A stretch of 64,000 nucleotides of DNA from Neoconidiobolus thromboides FSU 785 (taxonomy: Eukaryota > Fungi > Entomophthoromycota). Each line of letters starts with the position of its first letter. The first letter of the stretch is position 1. Made by a program: the position numbers and the translations under genes. The notes beneath the pieces were generated by a model. That model worked only from the letters and a program-made list of their open reading frames with translations. It did no database searches and was not told where the DNA came from. The stretch is from positions 64,732 through 128,731 of the forward strand of contig MU626299.1 in NCBI GenBank assembly GCA_025603075.1, read 5' to 3'. Shown in pieces: positions 4,914 to 28,144 of this stretch.

Positions 4914-5231
4914 ATGAGATTTGATGTAAATCGACTACTTTTAATGGCTATTACTTTTAGTATAGTTAATTGTTTTCTAGTGGAATTAGGTAATTTAAAA
5001 CAAGATGGTTTTAATAACGTACCCAAAGAAGCTGTTGATGGAATCACTTTTGACAATGATGCTGTTGTCGCTTTGTTCATAAATAATGAACAGGAGTTAG
5101 AAAAGGAGAGCATTGAAAAAAGGATTCTAGTCAAAAGAGACGGTGGCGGCCTTAATATTCCCATTGTTGGTGATGTGCTATCACTATTAAATATTGGCTC
5201 TTGGTTTGGAATTCAAGGGTTAGGATTATAA
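4914..5231 (+). CDS. Secreted prepropeptide (signal, acidic spacer, KR, 30-aa amphipathic C-terminal peptide), (L/I)PxxG family
   Basis: Hydrophobic N-terminus, acidic segment, then EKR-ILV-KR followed by DGGGLNIPIVGDVLSLLNIGSWFGIQGLGL. TATAAATA at 4849-4856. Confidence 0.75.
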   Translation: MRFDVNRLLLMAITFSIVNCFLVELGNLKQDGFNNVPKEAVDGITFDNDAVVALFINNEQELEKESIEKRILVKRDGGGLNIPIVGDVLSLLNIGSWFGIQGLGL

Positions 5232-6363: not shown

Positions 6364-7881
6364 CTATTTATTTTCAATTTCAATGTCAAATTTGCCCTGC
6401 TTTGGTTTTAAGACTAAAAAGAAATAAGGTTCTAATTCTTCATACTTTGGCCTCAACTTAAAATTAAAATTCTTAAACATGTAAACCAAAGTAAGGTACA
6501 TAGCCATCCAAGCGAATTCTCTACCGATACAAGAACGTGGGCCATTTAAAAAGGGTAAATAGTTCAATTTTTTATCTTTAGCATCTTGACCTAAAAATCG
6601 TTCAGGTATAAACTTATTAGCATCATGCCATAATTTTTCATTTCGATTATAAGCATAGCTACCAATCCCTACCTCCATATCTTTCGGTATAAAATAGGAG
6701 CCTAAGACTGCTCCTTCTTTAGGCACTACCCTTGGTAAAAAGCCTGCTCCAACAGGGTAGAGGCGCATAGCTTCATACAATACAGCTTCTAAATAAGGAC
6801 ATGCTTGTTTGATTTGTGAATAACTGATATCTTCATCATTCATATGACTAAAATTGGATTCGATTTCCTTTTGTATTTTCTCATAAACTTGGTCTTCTTC
6901 TAAAATGCATTTTAGTGCCCAAGTTAAAGTATTTGCGGTGGTATCTGTACCAGCAATAAAGCCAGTAATTATTTCAGCAGTTAAAGTATTGATGAGATTT
7001 GGATCAGTGCTAATGACTTCTGAATTCAAAAAAGCTTGTAAGATATCATTGTAGTCACTTGGCTTCTTATTTAAAGTCAATTGTTTCATTCTCAGCTTTA
7101 CTTTGTCTTTACAAAAGTTAATGAATTGAGTGTAACTATTATATCCAGTACTTTGTTTATTATGATTGAAATATCTTATTATTGGATATTCATATTGCAT
7201 TATGCCATAAACCTGGGCTTCTTTTAACCATTTCAATATTGGCAATTCGTTATTTTCATTTAATAAACCTAAATCTTCACTCAGTAAAAGTTGACCATTA
7301 ATATTAAATAAAACCTTATGAATTAATTCATAAAAATCGACAAAATTCTGCTTATTATCGATCTTTTGCTTTATGAAATTTTTGAAAGGCAAAAAGCCAG
7401 TGTGTTTCATAACTGGTTCCAGTTGTTGAATATTTTTATTGCTAATAATTTTACCAATAATCTTTTTACGTTCGGTATGTACGGTACGTTCATCAGTACT
7501 GAAAATATTAGCTGCTCCATAATCAAATGCTTGATAAAAGACAGATTTTTTAAACTTATACGAAGAGTAAATGGTGTCAGCTGCATTCTTTTCATTAAAG
7601 ATGATACGGTTTGGTGCAAAATGAACAACAGGACCATAAATATCATGTAAACGCTTTAAGTGTTCATGATATTTACCAATTGTTATATAGTATTTGATAT
7701 ACAATCCACTTAGTTTACCTAAAAATGGACCTGGGATGTGTCTTAATGGGGAGAAATAAAGAGTGTATGTTATCTATTTGAACTTTTGTTAATTTCATTC
7801 ATTTATTTATACATTTTTATTTACCTTAGTAATTAGTATTACTGTACTCAATACAAGGAAATAACCAATTAGTTGTATCAT
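6364..7881 (-). CDS. Cytochrome P450 (2 exons: 7881-7825, 7773-6364)
   Basis: N-terminal TM anchor MIQLIGYFLVLSTVILITK, 51-nt GTAAAT..TAG intron, SPLRHIPGP hinge, I-helix AGTDTTA, ExxR (EAMR), PERF and heme motif FLNGPRSCIG. Confidence 0.95.
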
Positions 7882-9296: not shown

Positions 9297-11633
9297 CGGG
9301 TTTATTATTATACTTCAATAAATTTTTACTTATATAATAGCAAGGACCTTTTTTATGATTTCATTTCAATTCTAAATTAGCCAGGGAATAATTTTATTTC
9401 ATTCTCAATATTATTAATGGATTTGAAGATTTATTATTTAAAATAGATTGGATTAAACTAGAATGGTTTATAGGTTATTATAGCTAAATCACAATTTTCA
9501 ATTTAAATTTAAATTATTTAATAAAACTAATACTATTGTTATTCTTTGTGAAATTATTTTACTATAAGCTACAATGACTAATAACTTTTTTGGCATTTTA
9601 CCAAAACAGTGCATGCTTATAAAAGTATGATGAAAAAATTCAATTGACAAGCATTATCTTAGACACATATCTATAAAAAAAAATTAACTATAGGAATATA
9701 CAGAAAAGCTTAGCCAATCTAATCAGTTAGAAAGTTTGTTTTGAGGTGTCTTTTGTTTCACATTTTTGTCCATTTTTTGACAAATAAATAAAAAATGACT
9801 TGAGATTCTGCGGAAACTTGTCATTTTTCAATTAAACTGCTAATATTGTCTTTAAACTTAAAAATTAAGATCAAAAAGCGTTAAAATCTATAATATATAT
9901 ACTATTTATGTATAAGGTTGTAAAGTAAAATGGAGGTGCCAATGCAGTTTGGTAAATATTAATCGTACTATATGTAATAAGCTGTTCCCATATCTCTTCT
10001 GTGGTTTACACTAGTGTTCATGAAATCCTTTTGCTTTTATAACACTTTTGATCCATTCTTTAAGGTACAATGCCCAACATTTACATCAACTACTATTTTA
10101 TTTAGGGGCATCTTACATAAACTAAAGCTAGGGAATTTCTAAAATATCACTTAAATCGGTTCTTAATTAGACTATTAGTGCTTTCGTGCTGTTTATTTTG
10201 AGACTTTAGTATCTTTAGATAGAAGATTCGATAAGACTATCGAAAGAATAAAAGTAAAAATATACTAATGTAGTCTCTATTAAATAGTGTATTTTATATT
10301 ATATATAGTTGGAGGATAGGCGAGTATAGAACTAAAACAGAGGAGGATATAGTATTTAATAAAAGATTAATTGATATAGACAGTTTGTACTAACTTATTA
10401 TTAACCGTCTATTACTTGTTTTGTTCAGTTAATTGTTTTATTTTCATCAACATGAAAGGCTTTGAATTCTTTGGATATTTGGGCTTTTGTTAATACCTTA
10501 GAAAAAAAGTGGGGCTGTATTTCGAATGATCTGATATTAATGAAAGTGAAAGTTTGGATACTGGATTAGTGTCAGCGGATAATCCAGATAATGAATCATA
10601 TTTTCGAATCTAATGTATCAAAAAAATGGTTATGAAATTGTATTTCATGTGAGGAATTGATATAAAACTAAAACAATAATGGTAATAGTAACAGTAGAAT
10701 CGAAAAGAGTATCAAAAACGATATTCAGTCAAGTAAATCAATAGATTAATTAAATCTAGATTATAAAGGAGCGGTATAGAATTGTACTTCATGTGATAAA
10801 TCAATAGTTATAGACTATAGAAATAATAATAAGATGATTTGAAAAAAGATTGAAGATAATGGGTAATCAAATAGGCAAATAGTTGATCCGAATTCGGGGT
10901 ACAGAAGATAGAGGTTGCTGCAATGTATTTTATACAACAGAGCTATAATTAGAAAACACAATATAATAAAAATTTAAAGAGAGGGTTTAACCATCGAGTA
11001 ATTAAATAGTTATTTAAGTAAACAAATGAATTAATGCAGTCTAGAATAAAGAATAAATTTACATAAATAAATATATGACATAATAAGAAAAAATAACATG
11101 TTTTTATAAATGATATAATAAGATAAAAATATCTAATTATTTTTAAAGAGGATTCCAACCATCAAATAATCGGGGATATGATTAAACCTTTTTAAAATCG
11201 ATATAATTTACTTAATTTGATAACTTCAGCACAATGATTTTGACTAAAATTTAATGCATTCACATAATATAACGTTAATAAAGTTATTAATAAAAGTTTG
11301 ACTTTGATGAGCAATAATTAATATGAATGATAGTGGCTTCCAATTCTAGAATCAATCGATGAAATTAATTAATATCAACAGTAATACAATTCAATTCATT
11401 ATTACAATTTATTATGTTTAAATTTGTTTTTAGATTAAACCTCTGAATTTCAAAGTTGACTATTAAACCGCAAGTCAACTATTTTTAGTTGATTAATAAA
11501 GGACTAAAATTATGGTATAAAAACATCTTCAAATAACATTAAATTCAGTATAAAAATAACATCTATCTATTGATTAGATATTACTTAATAAACAATCATC
11601 TTTTTGACAAAGATCTTTATACAGCCAACTAAT

Positions 11634-13040
11634 ATGGATTATTCATTACAAGTAATTAGCCCAACTCAAGCTACCTTCTTTCCTTCTCCAAAGCAGAAAA
11701 AGACAAGCAATTTAAAATTATTAGACCCAAGTTTATTTTCTGATCCTGGCTTAAAAGAATCTGTTAAACGTACCTTTTCCGCTTTATTAAGTGAAAAACC
11801 AAGTCTTAAATCTTACTTCAATAACCTACCAACATGTGATGCTTTAACCATGATTAAAAAAGAACTCGAAAATGGTATGGAAGATTCCTTCTTAGTCGGA
11901 GATTTAGGCGAAACATATCGTATGTATAAGTTATGGACAGAAAATTTACCTATGGTCAAGCCTTTTTATGCAGTGAAATCGAATCCAGATAGTAGTATGT
12001 TGAAGTTAATGGCAGCTATTGGGATTGGATTTGATTGTGCTAGCAAAAAAGAAATAAACACCATGTTACAACATGGAGTTAAACCAGAGGATATCATCTA
12101 TGCTAATCCATGTAAACAAGTATCTCATCTCAGATTTGCTAGACAAAATTCAGTAAAAAAGATGACCTTTGATAACTTGGAAGAATTACATAAGACCCAT
12201 AAATACTATCCCGATGCTGAATTATATTTACGTATATTACCAATGGATTGTAACTCTAAAGTACCTTTTGGCGAAAAATTTGGTGCTGAAGTGAATGGAT
12301 CTTGCGTTGATTTATTAAAAACAGCCAAAGAATTAAACTTGAATGTTACTGGTATTAGTTTTCATGTAGGTAGTGATTGTTTAAACCCACAGTCTTATGT
12401 AGAAACTATTAGAAGATCAAAATTAGTATTTGATCAAGCCAAAAAATTAGATATTAATATCAAAGTATTAGATATTGGTGGTGGTTTCCCAGGACATCAA
12501 AACAAGAAGGAATTTATTGAAATCGCCAAAGCAGTAACTGAAGCTTTAGATTTATATTATCAAAAAGAAGACGTGTCATTTATTGCTGAACCTGGTAGGT
12601 TCTTTGCTGCTTCTTATTTCACTTTAGCTACAACTGTTATTGGTAAACGTGTTTGTGAATCCAATGATGATTATAAATCTAAAAGTATCATGTATTATTT
12701 AAACGATGGTGTATTTAAATCCTTTGCTGAAGGTGCATTTATACCTCAAATTTTATATAAGCCTAGGATCTTAAAAAGAGGTGATGAAATCTATCCAAAG
12801 ATTGAATCTACAGAAAATGATGTCGAATGCTCTTTATGGGGTCCTGCTTTAGGTGCTAAAGATAAAATTAATATTGAAAAAGGATTGAAATTACCAGAAC
12901 TCAAATTAGAAGATTGGCTATATTTTGAAAATATGGGATCATATTCTACTTGCTTTAATATGGAATTTAATGGTTTTGAACAATCGCATAAAGTTTATAT
13001 TAATACCGAGAAAGAAGGAATTAACAAACTTTTAAAATAG
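11634..13040 (+). CDS. Ornithine decarboxylase-like fold-type III PLP protein with substituted catalytic Cys/Asp
   Basis: First in-frame ATG at 11634. PFYAVKSN (PLP Lys), FDCAS, IIYANPCK, SFHVGS, LDIGGGFPG, AEPGRFF and YYLNDG are present, but WGPALGAKD replaces WGPTCDxxD. Confidence 0.9.
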   Translation: MDYSLQVISPTQATFFPSPKQKKTSNLKLLDPSLFSDPGLKESVKRTFSALLSEKPSLKSYFNNLPTCDALTMIKKELENGMEDSFLVGDLGETYRMYKLWTENLPMVKPFYAVKSNPDSSMLKLMAAIGIGFDCASKKEINTMLQHGVKPEDIIYANPCKQVSHLRFARQNSVKKMTFDNLEELHKTHKYYPDAELYLRILPMDCNSKVPFGEKFGAEVNGSCVDLLKTAKELNLNVTGISFHVGSDCLNPQSYVETIRRSKLVFDQAKKLDINIKVLDIGGGFPGHQNKKEFIEIAKAVTEALDLYYQKEDVSFIAEPGRFFAASYFTLATTVIGKRVCESNDDYKSKSIMYYLNDGVFKSFAEGAFIPQILYKPRILKRGDEIYPKIESTENDVECSLWGPALGAKDKINIEKGLKLPELKLEDWLYFENMGSYSTCFNMEFNGFEQSHKVYINTEKEGINKLLK

Positions 13041-14528
13041 GAGTAGTTTTATAGTTTAATAAATAGTTTTATATGTTTAATTGATTTGTCTTAATTTTTG
13101 ATTAAAATAATGTGCTACTATTTTTAAAGAATCTTCTTATACAACACTACCCACTTTCAATAATTAACATAGTTAAAGTTATGATAAAGCTTTATAATAT
13201 ATTTATATTTTAATCTACTGAAATAAGTTAACATAAAAGCCTTTTAAAACAGTTATTAAAATCAAATTATGTACTACTTGATTAATACACAATGTAAACA
13301 TGTAATGAACTAATGTATATTAAGTAACTTAATAGTTTAAATAAAAAGTTAATTTACTATCTTATATAATAGTAACAACGGCTTTTAAGTATAGTTTGTT
13401 ATCATATTTTAAGGTTTTAGAACTATTACTTGTTTACATCAGAAAAAAGCGCAATCAGACATCCACCTCTATTCAATAGATGAAGGCCTTTAGGGCTAAC
13501 AATTAGAACTCAACAAAAATAGACCTACTAGGCCCCAATCATCATCGAGGATTAACAATATGCACGAGGCACTCAGTTTTAACTATAAATTGCTCTAGCT
13601 CGTTGATGATAGCAAAGCATTAGCTTAAACTAATGCAATAGCTCACCAGGACTTTCATCACGGCCAAGTAGCCCAGGACTGAGTTCAATAAAGAACAAAA
13701 ATATTAAGTTTATTATTCAGTTATTGTAAATATATTAATATGTTATATTATATTAGACAAAGCTACTTAAAATAGCTATAAATACCTTAGCCAAATAATT
13801 TTTTTAAATTAATTCTAATTCAATTACTAATATATTTCCTTAGTACTAGTATTTCTATATTTAGTTACTTTAATATATAAGAATGATTTTTTATTTGAGG
13901 GATTTATTAATGTTTTTCCGCTTAACAGCAATAAACCAAAGATGATATCCTCATGTGCTTATTGTTATTGTATCAAAGATAAGTATTTTTTGGCATCGCT
14001 TGTTTATATTGAAGATTTGATCTTTTTAAGATAAAAAGTAAAATGAGGAAGACATGAATTCAAATTAGATCAAGACTCAATGAAAAAGTTAGCTTTCTGA
14101 GTTTAACACTTAAATGCTAATATATTATTTTAGTAGGATTTAATGTGTAATTAGTTATGTTTCAGCTTTTCAGGTAAGAGTTTCCACCGTTTCTTAATTG
14201 TTGTTTATACCCAAGGATGGATTAGTTTTATAGTAAAGACTAAGAAAAACTTGGTAAATAATCTCAATAATATAGGATCCAAAGTTGAGAATTTTCAAAG
14301 TTGTCAAGTCAACGCAACAATAAAAGATTCAAATACTTGATATTAGGGAATATTAAATTCTAATTACAGTTTTAATTAATAATATCAATCTAATAAAATT
14401 ATTGTTATATAGCTAACTCCTTATTACCAAACTTCAATCTTTCCAAATATCACAGAAAACAAACTTAAATATTTAAAAAAATTTAGAATTAGTCTTTATT
14501 TATTAATTTAATATAATCAATCCTTTTT

Positions 14529-16028
14529 TTAAATCTTAGGTATAACCCATTTTAATAAATACCTAGGATCAACCATAGATAATGGATCTCCGACTATTGG
14601 AATTTTAACAGCTGGCATCTTCATTTTAGACATATCAATTCCCTTTTTCCCTTCCCCAGCAGTACCATGACCAATTTGGGTATCTGCTTTTTGATCTTGG
14701 GATTGTTTAGATTCATCGATATTATTGTAGGTTGGGTTTGCTGGGTATTTATTGTTATTTTGATTACTGCCCTCATAATTAGGATTGGTAGGGTATTTGT
14801 TTTGGTTATTGTTATTGTTTTTATTATTATTGTCATTTTGATTATTATTCCTACTATCAACCCCATAATCCGCTTTACATTTATAAATCCCATTAGAATT
14901 GGTATAAATTGGATAATCTTCAATTTTATCTGACATAGTAACAGCTGCCATTGGAGCATTATTTGGCATTGGCATATTAGAATGATCTTGTGTAACAGCT
15001 TTGTTGGGCATTGGCATATTAGAATGGTCTTGTGCAACAGCTTTGTTGGGCATTGGCATAGCAGAGTGATCTTCATCTCCATGACGGCGTTGCAATTTAG
15101 AATGTTTACATGGGGTTTTAATATCCATATTTGCCATATTTGAATGATCTTCAGTAGTTTGGGACTCGATTGGAGCACTGAAAGCAGCCATGTTAGGCAT
15201 CGAGGCACTGTTATCTCCCATGTTCTTTATTGCAGCATCACCAGACATCATATTACCATTCATTTCAGTGTTTTGACTCATGCTTGGAATATTGGGCATA
15301 TTTTCCATTGAAGCATCACCAGACATCATAGTACTTTCCATTGGGGCACTATCACTAGCCATATTTTCCATTCCTGGCATATCTGGCATATCTTCCATAG
15401 TATCCATATTTTGCATAAACGCTTCATTTGGCATATTAACATGATTTTCATCACCATGACGACGTTGTAATTTAGAGTGATCACATGGCTGTTTAATATT
15501 CATCTCAGACATATTAGAGTGGTCTTGATTAGATTGAGATCCCATTGGACTATTATTGTTCATAGTAGGCATCTCTTCCATATTAGTCATACTTTCCATA
15601 CCAGGCATTGATGAATGATCTTCTTCACCATGACGACGTTGTAATTTAGAGTGATCACATGGCTGTTTAATATTCATCTCAGACATATTAGAGTGGTCTT
15701 GATTAGATTGAGATCCCATTGGACTATTATTGTTCATAGTAGGCATCTCTTCCATATTAGTCATACTTTCCATACCAGGCATTGATGAATGACCTTCTTC
15801 TCCATGACGACGTTGTAATTTAGAATGATCACATGGTTGATTAGTAGCCATATTAGACATCATTGAATGTCCAGCATCACTATTTGATTCCATTGGATTA
15901 TTATTATTCATATTCGACATAGTAGAATGATTTTCATTTCCATGGCGACGATATAAACTCAATGGTGAAGAGCTGGCTTCAGTTATGAGTAAGTATAATG
16001 ATATTAATTTTAAACCAGTTAAATTCAT
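14529..16028 (-). CDS. Secreted Kex2-repeat polyprotein with His/Met-rich units; (L/I)PxxG family
   Basis: Signal peptide, five RRHG(N/E/D)E(N/G/D)H unit starts (four preceded by PC(D/K)HSKLQ), Met-rich bodies, YPIYTNSNGIYKCKADY motif, Asn-rich segment and C-terminal KIPIVGDPLSM. Confidence 0.9.
   Translation of the reverse strand: MNLTGLKLISLYLLITEASSSPLSLYRRHGNENHSTMSNMNNNNPMESNSDAGHSMMSNMATNQPCDHSKLQRRHGEEGHSSMPGMESMTNMEEMPTMNNNSPMGSQSNQDHSNMSEMNIKQPCDHSKLQRRHGEEDHSSMPGMESMTNMEEMPTMNNNSPMGSQSNQDHSNMSEMNIKQPCDHSKLQRRHGDENHVNMPNEAFMQNMDTMEDMPDMPGMENMASDSAPMESTMMSGDASMENMPNIPSMSQNTEMNGNMMSGDAAIKNMGDNSASMPNMAAFSAPIESQTTEDHSNMANMDIKTPCKHSKLQRRHGDEDHSAMPMPNKAVAQDHSNMPMPNKAVTQDHSNMPMPNNAPMAAVTMSDKIEDYPIYTNSNGIYKCKADYGVDSRNNNQNDNNNKNNNNNQNKYPTNPNYEGSNQNNNKYPANPTYNNIDESKQSQDQKADTQIGHGTAGEGKKGIDMSKMKMPAVKIPIVGDPLSMVDPRYLLKWVIPKI
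15455..15829 (-). repeat. 174-bp (58-codon) near-identical tandem duplication inside the polyprotein gene
   Basis: The motif tc(a/t)ccatgacgacgttgtaatttag recurs at 15451, 15625 and 15799, exactly 174 bp apart. Confidence 0.9.
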
Positions 16029-21387: not shown

Positions 21388-23109
21388 TTAATGCCCATAA
21401 ACTGGTAAAACATACGTTGGTTGATTATCAGGCTTAGTATGATGCTTAGTATGGTGTTTTTTATGCTTACGCTTGGATGATGCGGATATGACTTGATCAC
21501 AATCTTGAGTGCCTGTTGGGGAATTAGAGTCATAATTTGAAGCAGAAGTTGGAGAAGTATCATAATCTGAAGTGGAAGTAGGATAACTATTATCATTCTC
21601 TGGAAGACTGATATTGGGATTATAATTAGGATGAGCAAAGGGGAGGGGCTTAAGAATGGGAAGATTGATGATTGGTAATTTGATATTTAAATGAGAAGAA
21701 AGATCTGGACGTTTAGCTAAACAGACTGGAGATTTAAATCCAATTTGATTATAAGCGGAAATAACTTGAGCCAATTTAGATTCTTGTTCACGTACTAAAG
21801 TTAATGGGTAATTGTTCATTCTAGCCCAACTTTCAGGCAATGGTTTAGGTAACCTTAATTTATATGGATCTTGACGATCATTATAAGTTGGTCCTGTGAT
21901 AGGGATGTTGTTATAAATTGGAACACCAACTCCGATTGTAATGTTAATATTGAGCTGATTGTATTTGATTGGTAAGTAGCTTGGAATAGGAATATAAGAA
22001 CTATAAGTGGGATAAGATCCATGGCTACTAGTGCTCGATGATGGAGTAGATGAGGCTGATCCGGAAGATGAAGAAGTAGAGGTATTTGATCCAGAAGTAG
22101 TAGAGGAGCTGCCGCTTGAGCTTGAAGACGATGCGACACTTGAATTTGAGGAAGGTAAAGTAGAAGTAGGAGTGGCACTTGAACTTGAAGAGGAAGAAGT
22201 GGGATTAGGCATTGTATTGTTAACTTGAGGTGGTTTAGTAATATCAACGCCATCTTGGGTATAAGTATAACAGAGGGAGTTAATATTCAAGCCCGCAGAA
22301 GAAGGAACATTAAAAGGTGCTTGTATGTCATTAAGACCTACATCACGGTTATTTTGATTTTTGCCGCTAATAGTATTAGCTAAACTTGGGTTTGCCTGCT
22401 GCCAATCATGGTATATTTTATCAATAAAAGCATGATGGAGCCAAAATAATGGATCGTTAGTGCTAGCCATTGTTTGCATATCACCACCAACTCCATTATG
22501 AACTGAACCGTGTGGTGCGTATTCAATTTGTTGCCTCAATTGATCATAAGTTTTTGAGTTTGTAATAAGCGATTGGATAGCTTCTGGGGAGTAAAAGGCA
22601 GATATTGTTCCATCACCTCCGTTAAACTTACGAGCTAAGCAATGTGGGCTGGCGTTGATATTATAGTCATAATAACATTGCCAGTTAGCAAATTGGCCTT
22701 TAGTAACACAGTTATTTTGGCCAGTGCCTTCACCACCAAAGTAGTTATCTGAAAGGACACCACTTAACTCTGGAGCTTGGGAATCATATGACCAGTTCCA
22801 ATAAGGTAAGGCTACATTTGGATTTACAGCTTGTAATGCTTTCTCAAACTCACGTAAGAACAAGCGATGCCATACTAAAAAGTTAGCAGTACCATGGTTA
22901 TTTGGAGCATAAGTTAAATGAGTTTTAACAAAACTGGCATATTTGCTGGGCTGATTACCAGAATTTAATGTTCTCACAGCTTGAAAAAATGCTTGGATTT
23001 CAGCACTACTTAGCTGTCTTATTTCTTTTCTTTGGTAAACAGTATTACATTGACCATCAATTGAAGCTGAAAGATAAAGGAATGCGCAGAGGATAGATTT
23101 CAAACCCAT
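21388..23109 (-). CDS. Secreted tyrosinase (type-3 di-copper) with Ser/Thr-rich linker and C-terminal domain
   Basis: Signal peptide, CuA region (HLTYAPNNHGTANFLVWHRLFL), CuB region (PHGSVHNGVGGDM...NDPLFWLHHAFIDK) and LPYWNW motif. Confidence 0.95.
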   Translation of the reverse strand: MGLKSILCAFLYLSASIDGQCNTVYQRKEIRQLSSAEIQAFFQAVRTLNSGNQPSKYASFVKTHLTYAPNNHGTANFLVWHRLFLREFEKALQAVNPNVALPYWNWSYDSQAPELSGVLSDNYFGGEGTGQNNCVTKGQFANWQCYYDYNINASPHCLARKFNGGDGTISAFYSPEAIQSLITNSKTYDQLRQQIEYAPHGSVHNGVGGDMQTMASTNDPLFWLHHAFIDKIYHDWQQANPSLANTISGKNQNNRDVGLNDIQAPFNVPSSAGLNINSLCYTYTQDGVDITKPPQVNNTMPNPTSSSSSSSATPTSTLPSSNSSVASSSSSSGSSSTTSGSNTSTSSSSGSASSTPSSSTSSHGSYPTYSSYIPIPSYLPIKYNQLNINITIGVGVPIYNNIPITGPTYNDRQDPYKLRLPKPLPESWARMNNYPLTLVREQESKLAQVISAYNQIGFKSPVCLAKRPDLSSHLNIKLPIINLPILKPLPFAHPNYNPNISLPENDNSYPTSTSDYDTSPTSASNYDSNSPTGTQDCDQVISASSKRKHKKHHTKHHTKPDNQPTYVLPVYGH

Positions 23110-25056: not shown

Positions 25057-26079
25057 TTAACTACTATTTTGCTGAATCCATTGAGCATAAGTATTTACAC
25101 GTGCAAATACAGAAGGATAATCTGGATTAAGACATTTTAAGTCCTTAACAAAAGAAGTAACGCCAATAATAGTGTTATCAATAACAAGTGGACCTCCAGA
25201 GTCACCTTGACAAACAGATGAGCGGCCTTCACGATAACCAGCACACAAATGATGAGACTTAGTTAAACCTTGATAGGCAGCATTACAAGACTCAAAAGAA
25301 TATACAGGGAGATTAGCTTCTTGGAGCTTTGAAGCCAATTTTTGTTGATCGTTTGAATCAACCCTTCCCCAACCTGCAAATTTGGTTGAAGTACCTTCGC
25401 GATCACCTGTATTTTGGGTATCAATTTGGTAGAAATTACGTGTACTAACTGGGGCCGCTAATTTCCATATCGCAACATCATATTGAATAAAGCCGGCTGA
25501 GGTATAACTAGGATGCTTAATGATTTGGCTCACTCTATGTTCGGTGTATGAGCCATCTGGCCCACCTTTGATCTGCCCTTGGCCTTGGCCTTGTTTTGGC
25601 TGCTGCTGTCCTTGTGGAATTTGTGGTTGTTGCTCATGTGGTTGTTGCTCTTGTGGTATCCACGGCATTTGTGGTTGTTGCTCTTGTGGTATCCATGGCA
25701 TTTGTGGTTGTTGCTCTTGCGGTATCCATGGAATTTGTGGTTGTTGTCCTTGTGGTGGCCATTGACGCCTTTGTAGGTTTCCACCGGCATATGCCCACAC
25801 AGAGACAGAGGCAGGAGAATGTTCGGAACAATGGGCAGCAGTTAAAACAGTGTTAGCATTCAAGAGAGCACCACCGCAGGAATGTCCTCCATTAACACGT
25901 AATGAAACCAAAGATGGATAGTTTGCCCATGAACCGTCAGAGCCATTGATGATTTTGCTAGATGGAGTGTCATTCGATTTTGTTGAATTTCTATCGGCTG
26001 GTGCTGCTTGTGAAAATGCAGTTAAAGTAGCAATAACAACAACTTCAAGTGTTTTCATCAAAATTTCCTTCTGTACCAT
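25057..26079 (-). CDS. Secreted S1 (chymotrypsin-fold) serine protease with an internal Gln/Pro repeat insertion
   Basis: Signal and propeptide followed by IINGSDG. Catalytic triad TAAHC, YDVAIW, CQGDSGGP. About 70 extra residues lie between the His and Asp motifs. The start may be the second Met. Confidence 0.95.
   Translation of the reverse strand: MVQKEILMKTLEVVVIATLTAFSQAAPADRNSTKSNDTPSSKIINGSDGSWANYPSLVSLRVNGGHSCGGALLNANTVLTAAHCSEHSPASVSVWAYAGGNLQRRQWPPQGQQPQIPWIPQEQQPQMPWIPQEQQPQMPWIPQEQQPHEQQPQIPQGQQQPKQGQGQGQIKGGPDGSYTEHRVSQIIKHPSYTSAGFIQYDVAIWKLAAPVSTRNFYQIDTQNTGDREGTSTKFAGWGRVDSNDQQKLASKLQEANLPVYSFESCNAAYQGLTKSHHLCAGYREGRSSVCQGDSGGPLVIDNTIIGVTSFVKDLKCLNPDYPSVFARVNTYAQWIQQNSS
25620..25760 (-). 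repeat. 33-bp coding tandem repeat PQ(I/M)PWIPQEQQ
   Basis: Three full units plus partial units of tgtggttgttgctcttgtggtatccatggcatt. Confidence 0.9.
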
Positions 26080-27274: not shown

Positions 27275-28144
27275 ATGTTACAAAAATACAGTAAAATAGC
27301 ATTTATAGGAGGAGGTAATATGAGCGGAGCGATCGTAGGCGGTCTATTAAAGGCAAAGTATCCGGCTAACAAAATAAGTATAAGTGAGCCAAATGAGAAC
27401 AGAAGGAAGGAATTAGAGACTTTATTTAGTGGAGTAACTATAACTGACAATAATTTGAAAGCAGCAGACAACAGTGAAACAATAGTATTAGGAGTAAAGC
27501 CTAATATAACAAAAAAAGTATTGACTGAAAATGGGCTCTCAGACTTATTAAATGAACAAAGTAGTATATTAGTTTCCTTAGTAGCGGGAGTTAAAGTTGA
27601 TTCTATGAAAAAATGGTTAACAAATTATGAAAAATTGAAGATTGTTAGATGTATGCCCAATACCCCAGCTTTAGTAGGGCAAGGGGCTTTAGGTTTTTAT
27701 TATGAAAATGAAGATCAAGGTTTAAGAAACAAAGTGGAATCGATCATGGGATCAATAGCTGGTGAGGGAGGTATGGTTTGGGTAACCAGAGAAAACTTGA
27801 TGGATAGCATAACTGCTATTTCTGGTTCCGGTCCTGCTTACTTTTTTTATATGTTGGAATGTATGGAGAAAGAAGGTGTACGCCTTGGATTAGAGCCTTT
27901 ACAAGCCAGAAGACTAGCCACGGTTACTGCGCTAGGTGCTTCTAAAATGGTTCTAAATCAATGCTTCGATGGTGAAGTAGATCCTAAAGAATTAAGAAGA
28001 AGAGTTACTAGCCCCAATGGTACTACTTATGCTGCAATTCAACAGCTTATTAAAGACGATTTTGAGACTGTCATTAAAAATACTTTAAATGCATGTAGTG
28101 AGAGATCCAAAGAAATTGGCATTGAGATGGAGAATCAAAATTAA
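27275..28144 (+). CDS. PRO3: Pyrroline-5-carboxylate reductase
   Basis: IAFIGGGNM Rossmann motif, VLGVKP, VRCMPNTP, TAISGSGPAY and VTSPNGTT. Confidence 0.97.
   Translation: MLQKYSKIAFIGGGNMSGAIVGGLLKAKYPANKISISEPNENRRKELETLFSGVTITDNNLKAADNSETIVLGVKPNITKKVLTENGLSDLLNEQSSILVSLVAGVKVDSMKKWLTNYEKLKIVRCMPNTPALVGQGALGFYYENEDQGLRNKVESIMGSIAGEGGMVWVTRENLMDSITAISGSGPAYFFYMLECMEKEGVRLGLEPLQARRLATVTALGASKMVLNQCFDGEVDPKELRRRVTSPNGTTYAAIQQLIKDDFETVIKNTLNACSERSKEIGIEMENQN

Follow-up and report, generated by a model that had tools for sequence, protein, structure and literature searches.

A 64,000-nt stretch of the entomophthoralean fungus Neoconidiobolus thromboides FSU 785 (scaffold MU626299.1, assembly GCA_025603075.1, positions 64,732 to 128,731; hereafter the window) carries a gene for a paralog of ornithine decarboxylase (ODC). 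The predicted protein keeps the pyridoxal 5'-phosphate (PLP) site of ODC and has lost all three residues that are specific for ornithine decarboxylation, Cys360, Asp361 and Asp332. The same altered pocket was found in homologs from Entomophthora muscae and Massospora cicadina. From these sequence comparisons we consider it an even bet that the product is a functional PLP-binding enzyme with a non-basic substrate, from an ODC-derived paralog family specific to the entomophthoralean lineage.

Cofactor site and substrate pocket

The gene is a complete single-exon coding sequence (CDS) at 11634..13040 on the forward strand (TAG stop counted in) for a protein of 468 aa, in a window with a G+C content of about 26%. 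The frame runs from the ATG at 11634 to the TAG at 13040 without interruption, as the initial annotation had stated, and an in-frame stop precedes the ATG. Both Pfam domains of the family are present: PF02784 (Orn_Arg_deC_N barrel, 4.4e-74) and PF00278 (Orn_DAP_Arg_deC sheet domain, 1.2e-11). The closest solved relatives by HMMER are human, mouse and Trypanosoma brucei ODC (E ~1e-87). An AlphaFold (AF2) model built with 60 homologs as input has a mean pLDDT of 89.5, and its top structural match is human ODC (target TM-score 0.90). The protein thus resembles eukaryotic ODC (group IV, alanine-racemase fold, EC 4.1.1.17) in its two-domain fold, in sequence (~38–46% identity), and in its PLP site, carboxylate pocket and dimer residues.

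The deposited model P0001 (387 aa) is the same protein minus its N-terminus and begins at Met82. The N-terminal extension (residues 1–81, 11634..11876, forward strand) is therefore absent from the public record. Residues 1–28 of the extension have pLDDT below 50, and residues ~63–78 align with a motif common to two paralogs from the same genome, P0002 and P0004. Since the longer frame carries this shared motif, P0001 appears to be truncated at its N-terminus.

Residues were counted along the human ODC chain in the HMMER alignment and in a separate MAFFT alignment anchored on a fish ODC. The MAFFT residue table holds 15 sequences, seven of which are core members of the fungal clade (the window protein, P0002, P0004, P0005, P0007, P0009 and P0010). 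The critical ODC positions were taken from the lists quoted in PMC5518511 and PMC5574924, the 18-residue list from the latter. The motifs AVKSN, HVGS, GGGF and EPGR, reported intact in the initial annotation, are so in both the sequence and the alignment, and all lie on the forward strand. Lys115 (codon AAA, 11976..11978, in AVKSN) is the equivalent of the Schiff-base Lys69 and is invariant in all 15 aligned sequences. HVGS (12363..12374) supplies the equivalents of His197 and Ser200 for PLP ring stacking and contact, the GGG loop within GGGF (12477..12485) those of Gly235-237 for phosphate binding, and EPGR (12588..12599) those of Glu274 and Arg277. The window protein also retains D88, E94, R154, K169, G171, D233, D364, G387, Y389, F397 and N398, so that both the salt-bridge residues of the dimer and the pocket for the carboxylate (Tyr389, Phe397) are in place; of the critical positions on these lists, only 332, 360 and 361 are changed. 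Over the seven clade sequences 16 of the 18 key ODC residues, plus E94, D233 and N398, are invariant; the sole exception is R154, which falls in a gap in P0010, a shorter Massospora model. All other PLP contacts and dimer residues are kept in the clade.

The substrate pocket, in contrast, is replaced at two places. The loop WGPALGAKD (12837..12863, forward strand) stands where human ODC has WGPTCDGLD, as read from the translation and from both alignments. It carries T359A, C360L (codon TTA, 12849-12851), D361G, G362A and L363K and keeps Asp364, which bears out the absence of Cys360 and Asp361 noted in the initial annotation. The second place is the specificity helix that carries Asp332. In addition, NDGVFKSF (12702..12725, forward strand) replaces NDGVYGSF, also as first described: each of the seven clade members has Phe for Tyr323 and Lys for Gly324. 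Both alignments place Asp332 of ODC in the ILYDHA segment rather than in NDGVY, and the window protein has Ile370 there (codon ATA, 12741..12743, forward strand), again Ile in seven of seven. The loss of Asp332 is added here to the two losses already described. Relative to ODC there are also small insertions after positions 337 and 366 in the MAFFT alignment.

Distribution, selection and transcription

We searched 5.8 billion clustered proteins with three queries (the window protein, a clade profile and the divergent E. muscae protein P0142), taking the best 120 matches of each search. N. thromboides FSU 785 has three such paralogs on three scaffolds: the window gene, P0002 (62% identity to the window protein) and P0004 (55%). 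The only other close relatives among the matches listed are two clusters from E. muscae and two from M. cicadina; P0142, though very divergent, groups with them. NCBI labels the Entomophthora and Massospora members ornithine decarboxylase. The other core clade members share just 54–62% overall identity with the window protein. Six of the seven (the window protein, P0002, P0005, P0007, P0009 and P0010) nevertheless have one and the same pocket: F323, K324, I332, A359, L360, G361, A362 and K363. P0004 departs from it with S359, C360, A361, A362 and I363. Among the 265 homologs retrieved, Leu-Gly at 360-361 is confined to the entomophthoralean clade, and Cys-Asp is found in 180.

The initial annotation had asked whether the substitution is conserved in relatives and whether it could be an assembly error. 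It is conserved across genera, and the E. muscae and Massospora orthologs differ with dN 0.14 and saturated dS, a ratio of ~0.05. No assembly error was found either. Contigs from the other-sample runs X2, X4 and X5 span the motif at 12837-12863, and there is no indel across the whole CDS. The listed CDS differences in these independent runs (n = 32) comprise 28 synonymous and 4 non-synonymous changes; none of those listed lies inside the motif, and 74 further differences fall outside the listing. Because the motif agrees across independent contigs, the CDS has no indels, the variants stand at 28:4 and the gene is conserved in three genera, we conclude that it is real and under strong purifying selection, and neither an assembly error nor a decaying pseudogene.

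In each of the runs X2 and X4 the region 11300-13300 is represented by two contigs, one identical to the window and the other ~6–7% different. Most of these differences are synonymous transitions, which points to two haplotypes or to strains sequenced together.

Three relatives deserve separate mention. P0142, the third E. muscae protein, is short at its C-terminus. Its loop is WGPTCASQD, with Ala for Asp361, and Pro takes the place of Asp332. It has no database ortholog and could be either a copy in decay or the product of a faulty gene model. In Lingula anatina, the second unit of a tandem ODC fusion (P0006) reads WGPTLSPTD, an independent change of Cys360 to Leu and Asp361 to Ser in an animal. 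The gene of P0005 is duplicated on the E. muscae contig QTSX02002984.1, where two copies (L004:9964-11270 and L005:9964-11270) lie ~20 kb apart in opposite orientation. They share only 1307 bp at 99.9% identity, which covers the intronless gene and ~35 bp on each side. The second copy is gene-sized, recent, and possibly retroposed or transposon-borne.

Phylogeny

In a maximum-likelihood tree of 55 sequences, the eight entomophthoralean proteins come out as one clade with support of 100/99, separate from the canonical fungal ODCs. The initial annotation had called for such a tree. The stem of the clade is long, at 0.88 plus 0.63 changes per site, and its attachment to a further long branch, a dictyostelid one, is weak (87/48). 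Constraining all fungal sequences together costs just 2 log-likelihood units (approximately unbiased [AU] test, p 0.45). The data are fully compatible with a fungal origin through duplication and fast divergence. Horizontal transfer was considered and no case for it was found, as fungal monophyly including the clade is not rejected.

The three N. thromboides copies group together (100/98) and are therefore recent duplicates. P0004, which has Cys at 360, nests with P0002 inside this trio. Grouping the six Leu-Gly sequences as one clade narrowly escapes rejection (AU p 0.084). The Leu codons at 360 are TTA or CTT, and the Cys codon of P0004 is TGT, two steps from TTA. The Cys of P0004 may be either a retention or a reversal, both of which are compatible with this test.

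A proposed PLP enzyme with a changed substrate

The initial annotation had proposed two readings, a PLP enzyme acting on another substrate and a convergently evolved antizyme inhibitor. We favor the first, given that every PLP contact is kept; the second fares less well and is weighed below. The changed substrate is preferred over decay because the PLP machinery shows no variation and, in three genera, the changed positions have settled on a single new set of residues. In this proposal the family would have arisen from ornithine decarboxylase in entomophthoralean fungi and later been duplicated, so that N. thromboides now has three copies. The substrate side chain is read by two elements, the Asp332 specificity helix and the Cys360-Asp361 loop contributed by the partner subunit, and both have been rebuilt into one fixed, non-acidic and largely apolar set. 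The protein is predicted to be still homodimeric and PLP-binding and to act on the alpha-carbon of an amino acid, with its grip on the distal ammonium of ornithine presumably lost. If that ammonium is no longer held, the substrate would therefore be a non-basic amino acid or amino-acid derivative. The enzyme would then not be the putrescine-forming ODC of the cell. The family also shows growth in copy number and variation in the pocket (S-C-A-A-I in P0004).

Without the Cys that protonates C-alpha, the protein could be a slower decarboxylase using another proton donor, or it could carry out decarboxylation-linked transamination and release an aldehyde instead of an amine. Jackson and co-workers are said to have found in 2000 that T. 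brucei ODC with C360A or C360S is slowed and diverted towards decarboxylation-linked transamination. A more specific and clearly more doubtful proposal is that this is the first natural alanine-racemase-fold family to work without the catalytic Cys. It would use a neutral amino acid, possibly yield an aldehyde, and serve a lineage-specific metabolite rather than polyamines in the insect-pathogenic Entomophthorales Neoconidiobolus, Entomophthora and Massospora.

Several known enzymes offer a precedent in part. The N-citrylornithine decarboxylase FigC/FslC and its relatives SbnH and AcsE are alanine-racemase-fold enzymes outside polyamine synthesis that were re-specified at the Asp adjacent to the Cys and at the specificity-helix Asp (PMC7857480). 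In FigC the former is Met and the latter is also replaced (PMC7857480). The known re-specification of the fold thus uses the same two elements, which supports a changed substrate here. Unlike the fungal proteins, FigC keeps the Cys, and it belongs to a different, bacterial clade related to diaminopimelate decarboxylase. Mouse Gm853 is an ODC paralog that acts as a leucine decarboxylase on a neutral substrate, with no ornithine activity and no antizyme binding (PMC6313458). It differs from the fungal family in that none of the 20 critical ODC residues is lost, C360, D361 and D332 among them (PMC5518511). LolD of the loline cluster and other recruited type III PLP decarboxylases are ODC-like enzymes outside polyamine metabolism (PMC11350588); such recruitment is known in fungi and bacteria, with LolD and Mur23 as examples (PMC11350588). 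LolD sits in a defined biosynthetic cluster, whereas no conserved cluster surrounds the fungal family.

A number of points weigh against a changed substrate. The catalytic Cys has been called conserved in all alanine-racemase-fold decarboxylases (PMC7857480), and an inactive form is what its loss would lead one to expect. Judged by the Ivanov et al. (2010) criteria, which are quoted in PMC5518511 and PMC5574924, the window protein would count as catalytically inactive. No substrate can be named, and there is no conserved neighbor gene to suggest a pathway. Signs of transcription are weak: a run presumed to be RNA covers just 11790-12918, inside the CDS, and another run with the species label of the source covers nothing of the locus.

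A FigC-like route to rhizoferrin was also considered, as the Entomophthorales are cited as rhizoferrin producers (PMC7857480). It was rejected. The NCBIfam FslC model NF041039 scores 25.1 bits against the window protein (cut-off 500), so there is no match at the family level. No gene for an NRPS-independent siderophore (NIS) synthetase is found among the ORFs scanned beside the window gene or among the called neighbors of the two paralogs. FigC, moreover, keeps the Cys.

Alternative explanations

The strongest alternative, possible but clearly less probable than a changed substrate, is a regulatory pseudoenzyme that carries out no catalysis. Such a protein would influence polyamine homeostasis as an antizyme sink, i.e., a convergent fungal antizyme inhibitor, or by forming crippled or altered heterodimers with the canonical ODC. 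The residues lost are exactly the three needed for ornithine, and mammalian antizyme inhibitors (AZINs) are likewise ODC paralogs that have lost decarboxylation residues, C360 among them (PMC6738921). Heterodimers are conceivable, as the protein retains K169, D364 and G387 of the dimer, and zygomycete fungi have antizymes (PMC4505036). Lys141 and the stretch equivalent to the antizyme-binding element (ODC 117-140) are about as conserved as in canonical fungal ODCs, which fits a regulator and does not discriminate. Inactive ODC homologs with presumed regulatory roles arose many times, according to the account of Ivanov et al. (2010) given in PMC5518511 and PMC5574924. By that account repeated inactive-looking homologs were already published, and the antizyme-inhibitor option is less new than the initial annotation implied.

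The cofactor site argues the other way. Mammalian AZIN1 and AZIN2 lack K69 as well as C360 (PMC6738921), whereas all members of the fungal clade have Lys69 and, apart from the gap in P0010, every PLP contact, and antizyme binding alone needs no cofactor site. The comparison with AZIN2 made in the initial annotation holds for the mammalian protein and not for the frog one: P0097, a frog protein labelled AZIN2, reads TCD, and Xenopus AZIN2 is an active decarboxylase (PMC6738921). The pocket of the fungal clade is fixed to one new set of residues rather than decayed, and three to four copies per genome would be unusual for a stoichiometric regulator. In the tree the clade is not of vertebrate AZIN descent, so any such role would be convergent. 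The polyamine-sensing upstream frame that encodes PPW in leaders of the AZIN1/ODC type was not found in any forward frame within 2.5 kb upstream at six loci: the window gene, its two paralogs, and the Entomophthora and Massospora copies (L002 to L006 for those outside the window).

An enzyme of a local cluster, tailoring a peptide or aromatic substrate together with the neighboring P450, tyrosinase, protease and Kex2-type peptide precursors, is improbable. The window gene lies between a cytochrome P450 gene upstream (6364-7704, reverse strand) and, downstream, a gene for a secreted His/Met-rich repeat polyprotein whose units end in LQRR cut sites (14529-16028, reverse strand). Within 15 kb there are also genes for a tyrosinase (21388-23109, reverse strand), a trypsin-like protease (25057-26079, reverse strand) and a pyrroline-5-carboxylate reductase (27275-28144, forward strand); a tetratricopeptide repeat protein is listed between the polyprotein and the tyrosinase. 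Peptides and carrier-bound molecules are among the known substrates of type III PLP decarboxylases (PMC11350588), and the surroundings resemble a loose secondary-metabolite neighborhood. The arrangement is not conserved, however. P0002 is flanked by genes for a glycosyltransferase, an alcohol dehydrogenase and an S9 peptidase, P0004 by unrelated housekeeping genes, and the three N. thromboides paralogs share no neighbor. The Entomophthora and Massospora orthologs stand alone, with no called gene within 10 kb. A pocket identical across genomes argues for a common small substrate that is independent of the neighborhood.

The polyprotein at 14529-16028 and a small signal-peptide precursor 9 kb away (4914-5231, forward strand) both have an IPIVGD(P/V)LS-type motif near the C-terminus.

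It is very unlikely that the protein is still an ornithine decarboxylase, sole or auxiliary, with an unconventional active site. Its best matches in sequence and structure are all ODCs, and the database name of the Entomophthora and Massospora members says the same, yet the Cys and both Asp residues that hold the distal amine are absent. No canonical ODC from any entomophthoralean fungus was found among the matches listed, which is weak evidence on absence. P0142 was examined as a candidate for it and rejected, on account of its TCASQD motif, the missing FNGF at its C-terminus, the lack of an ortholog and a branch length of 2.4 changes per site. An assembly artefact or a decaying pseudogene has next to no probability, given the agreement of the independent contigs, the intact CDS, the excess of synonymous variants and the presence of the gene in three genera.

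Significance

ODC paralogs with altered critical residues were already known, and public databases already list the proteins described here by generic names. The new element is a clade confined, among the matches listed, to the Entomophthorales, in which the cofactor site is kept, the pocket is rebuilt and fixed, the Cys taken to be universal in the fold is lost, and the gene has multiplied. On either reading, changed substrate or antizyme regulation, database names such as "ornithine decarboxylase" are probably wrong for these proteins. ODC paralogs that fail the 18-residue test are usually dismissed as inactive regulators; here the pattern may instead be the signature of a changed substrate rather than of decay. 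If the proteins bind antizyme, they would be the first antizyme inhibitor in fungi. If they are active enzymes, the supposedly universal Cys of the fold would be dispensable, or its loss would redirect the chemistry, and the family would point to a novel metabolite, an amine or an aldehyde, in a group of insect pathogens about whose small molecules little is known.

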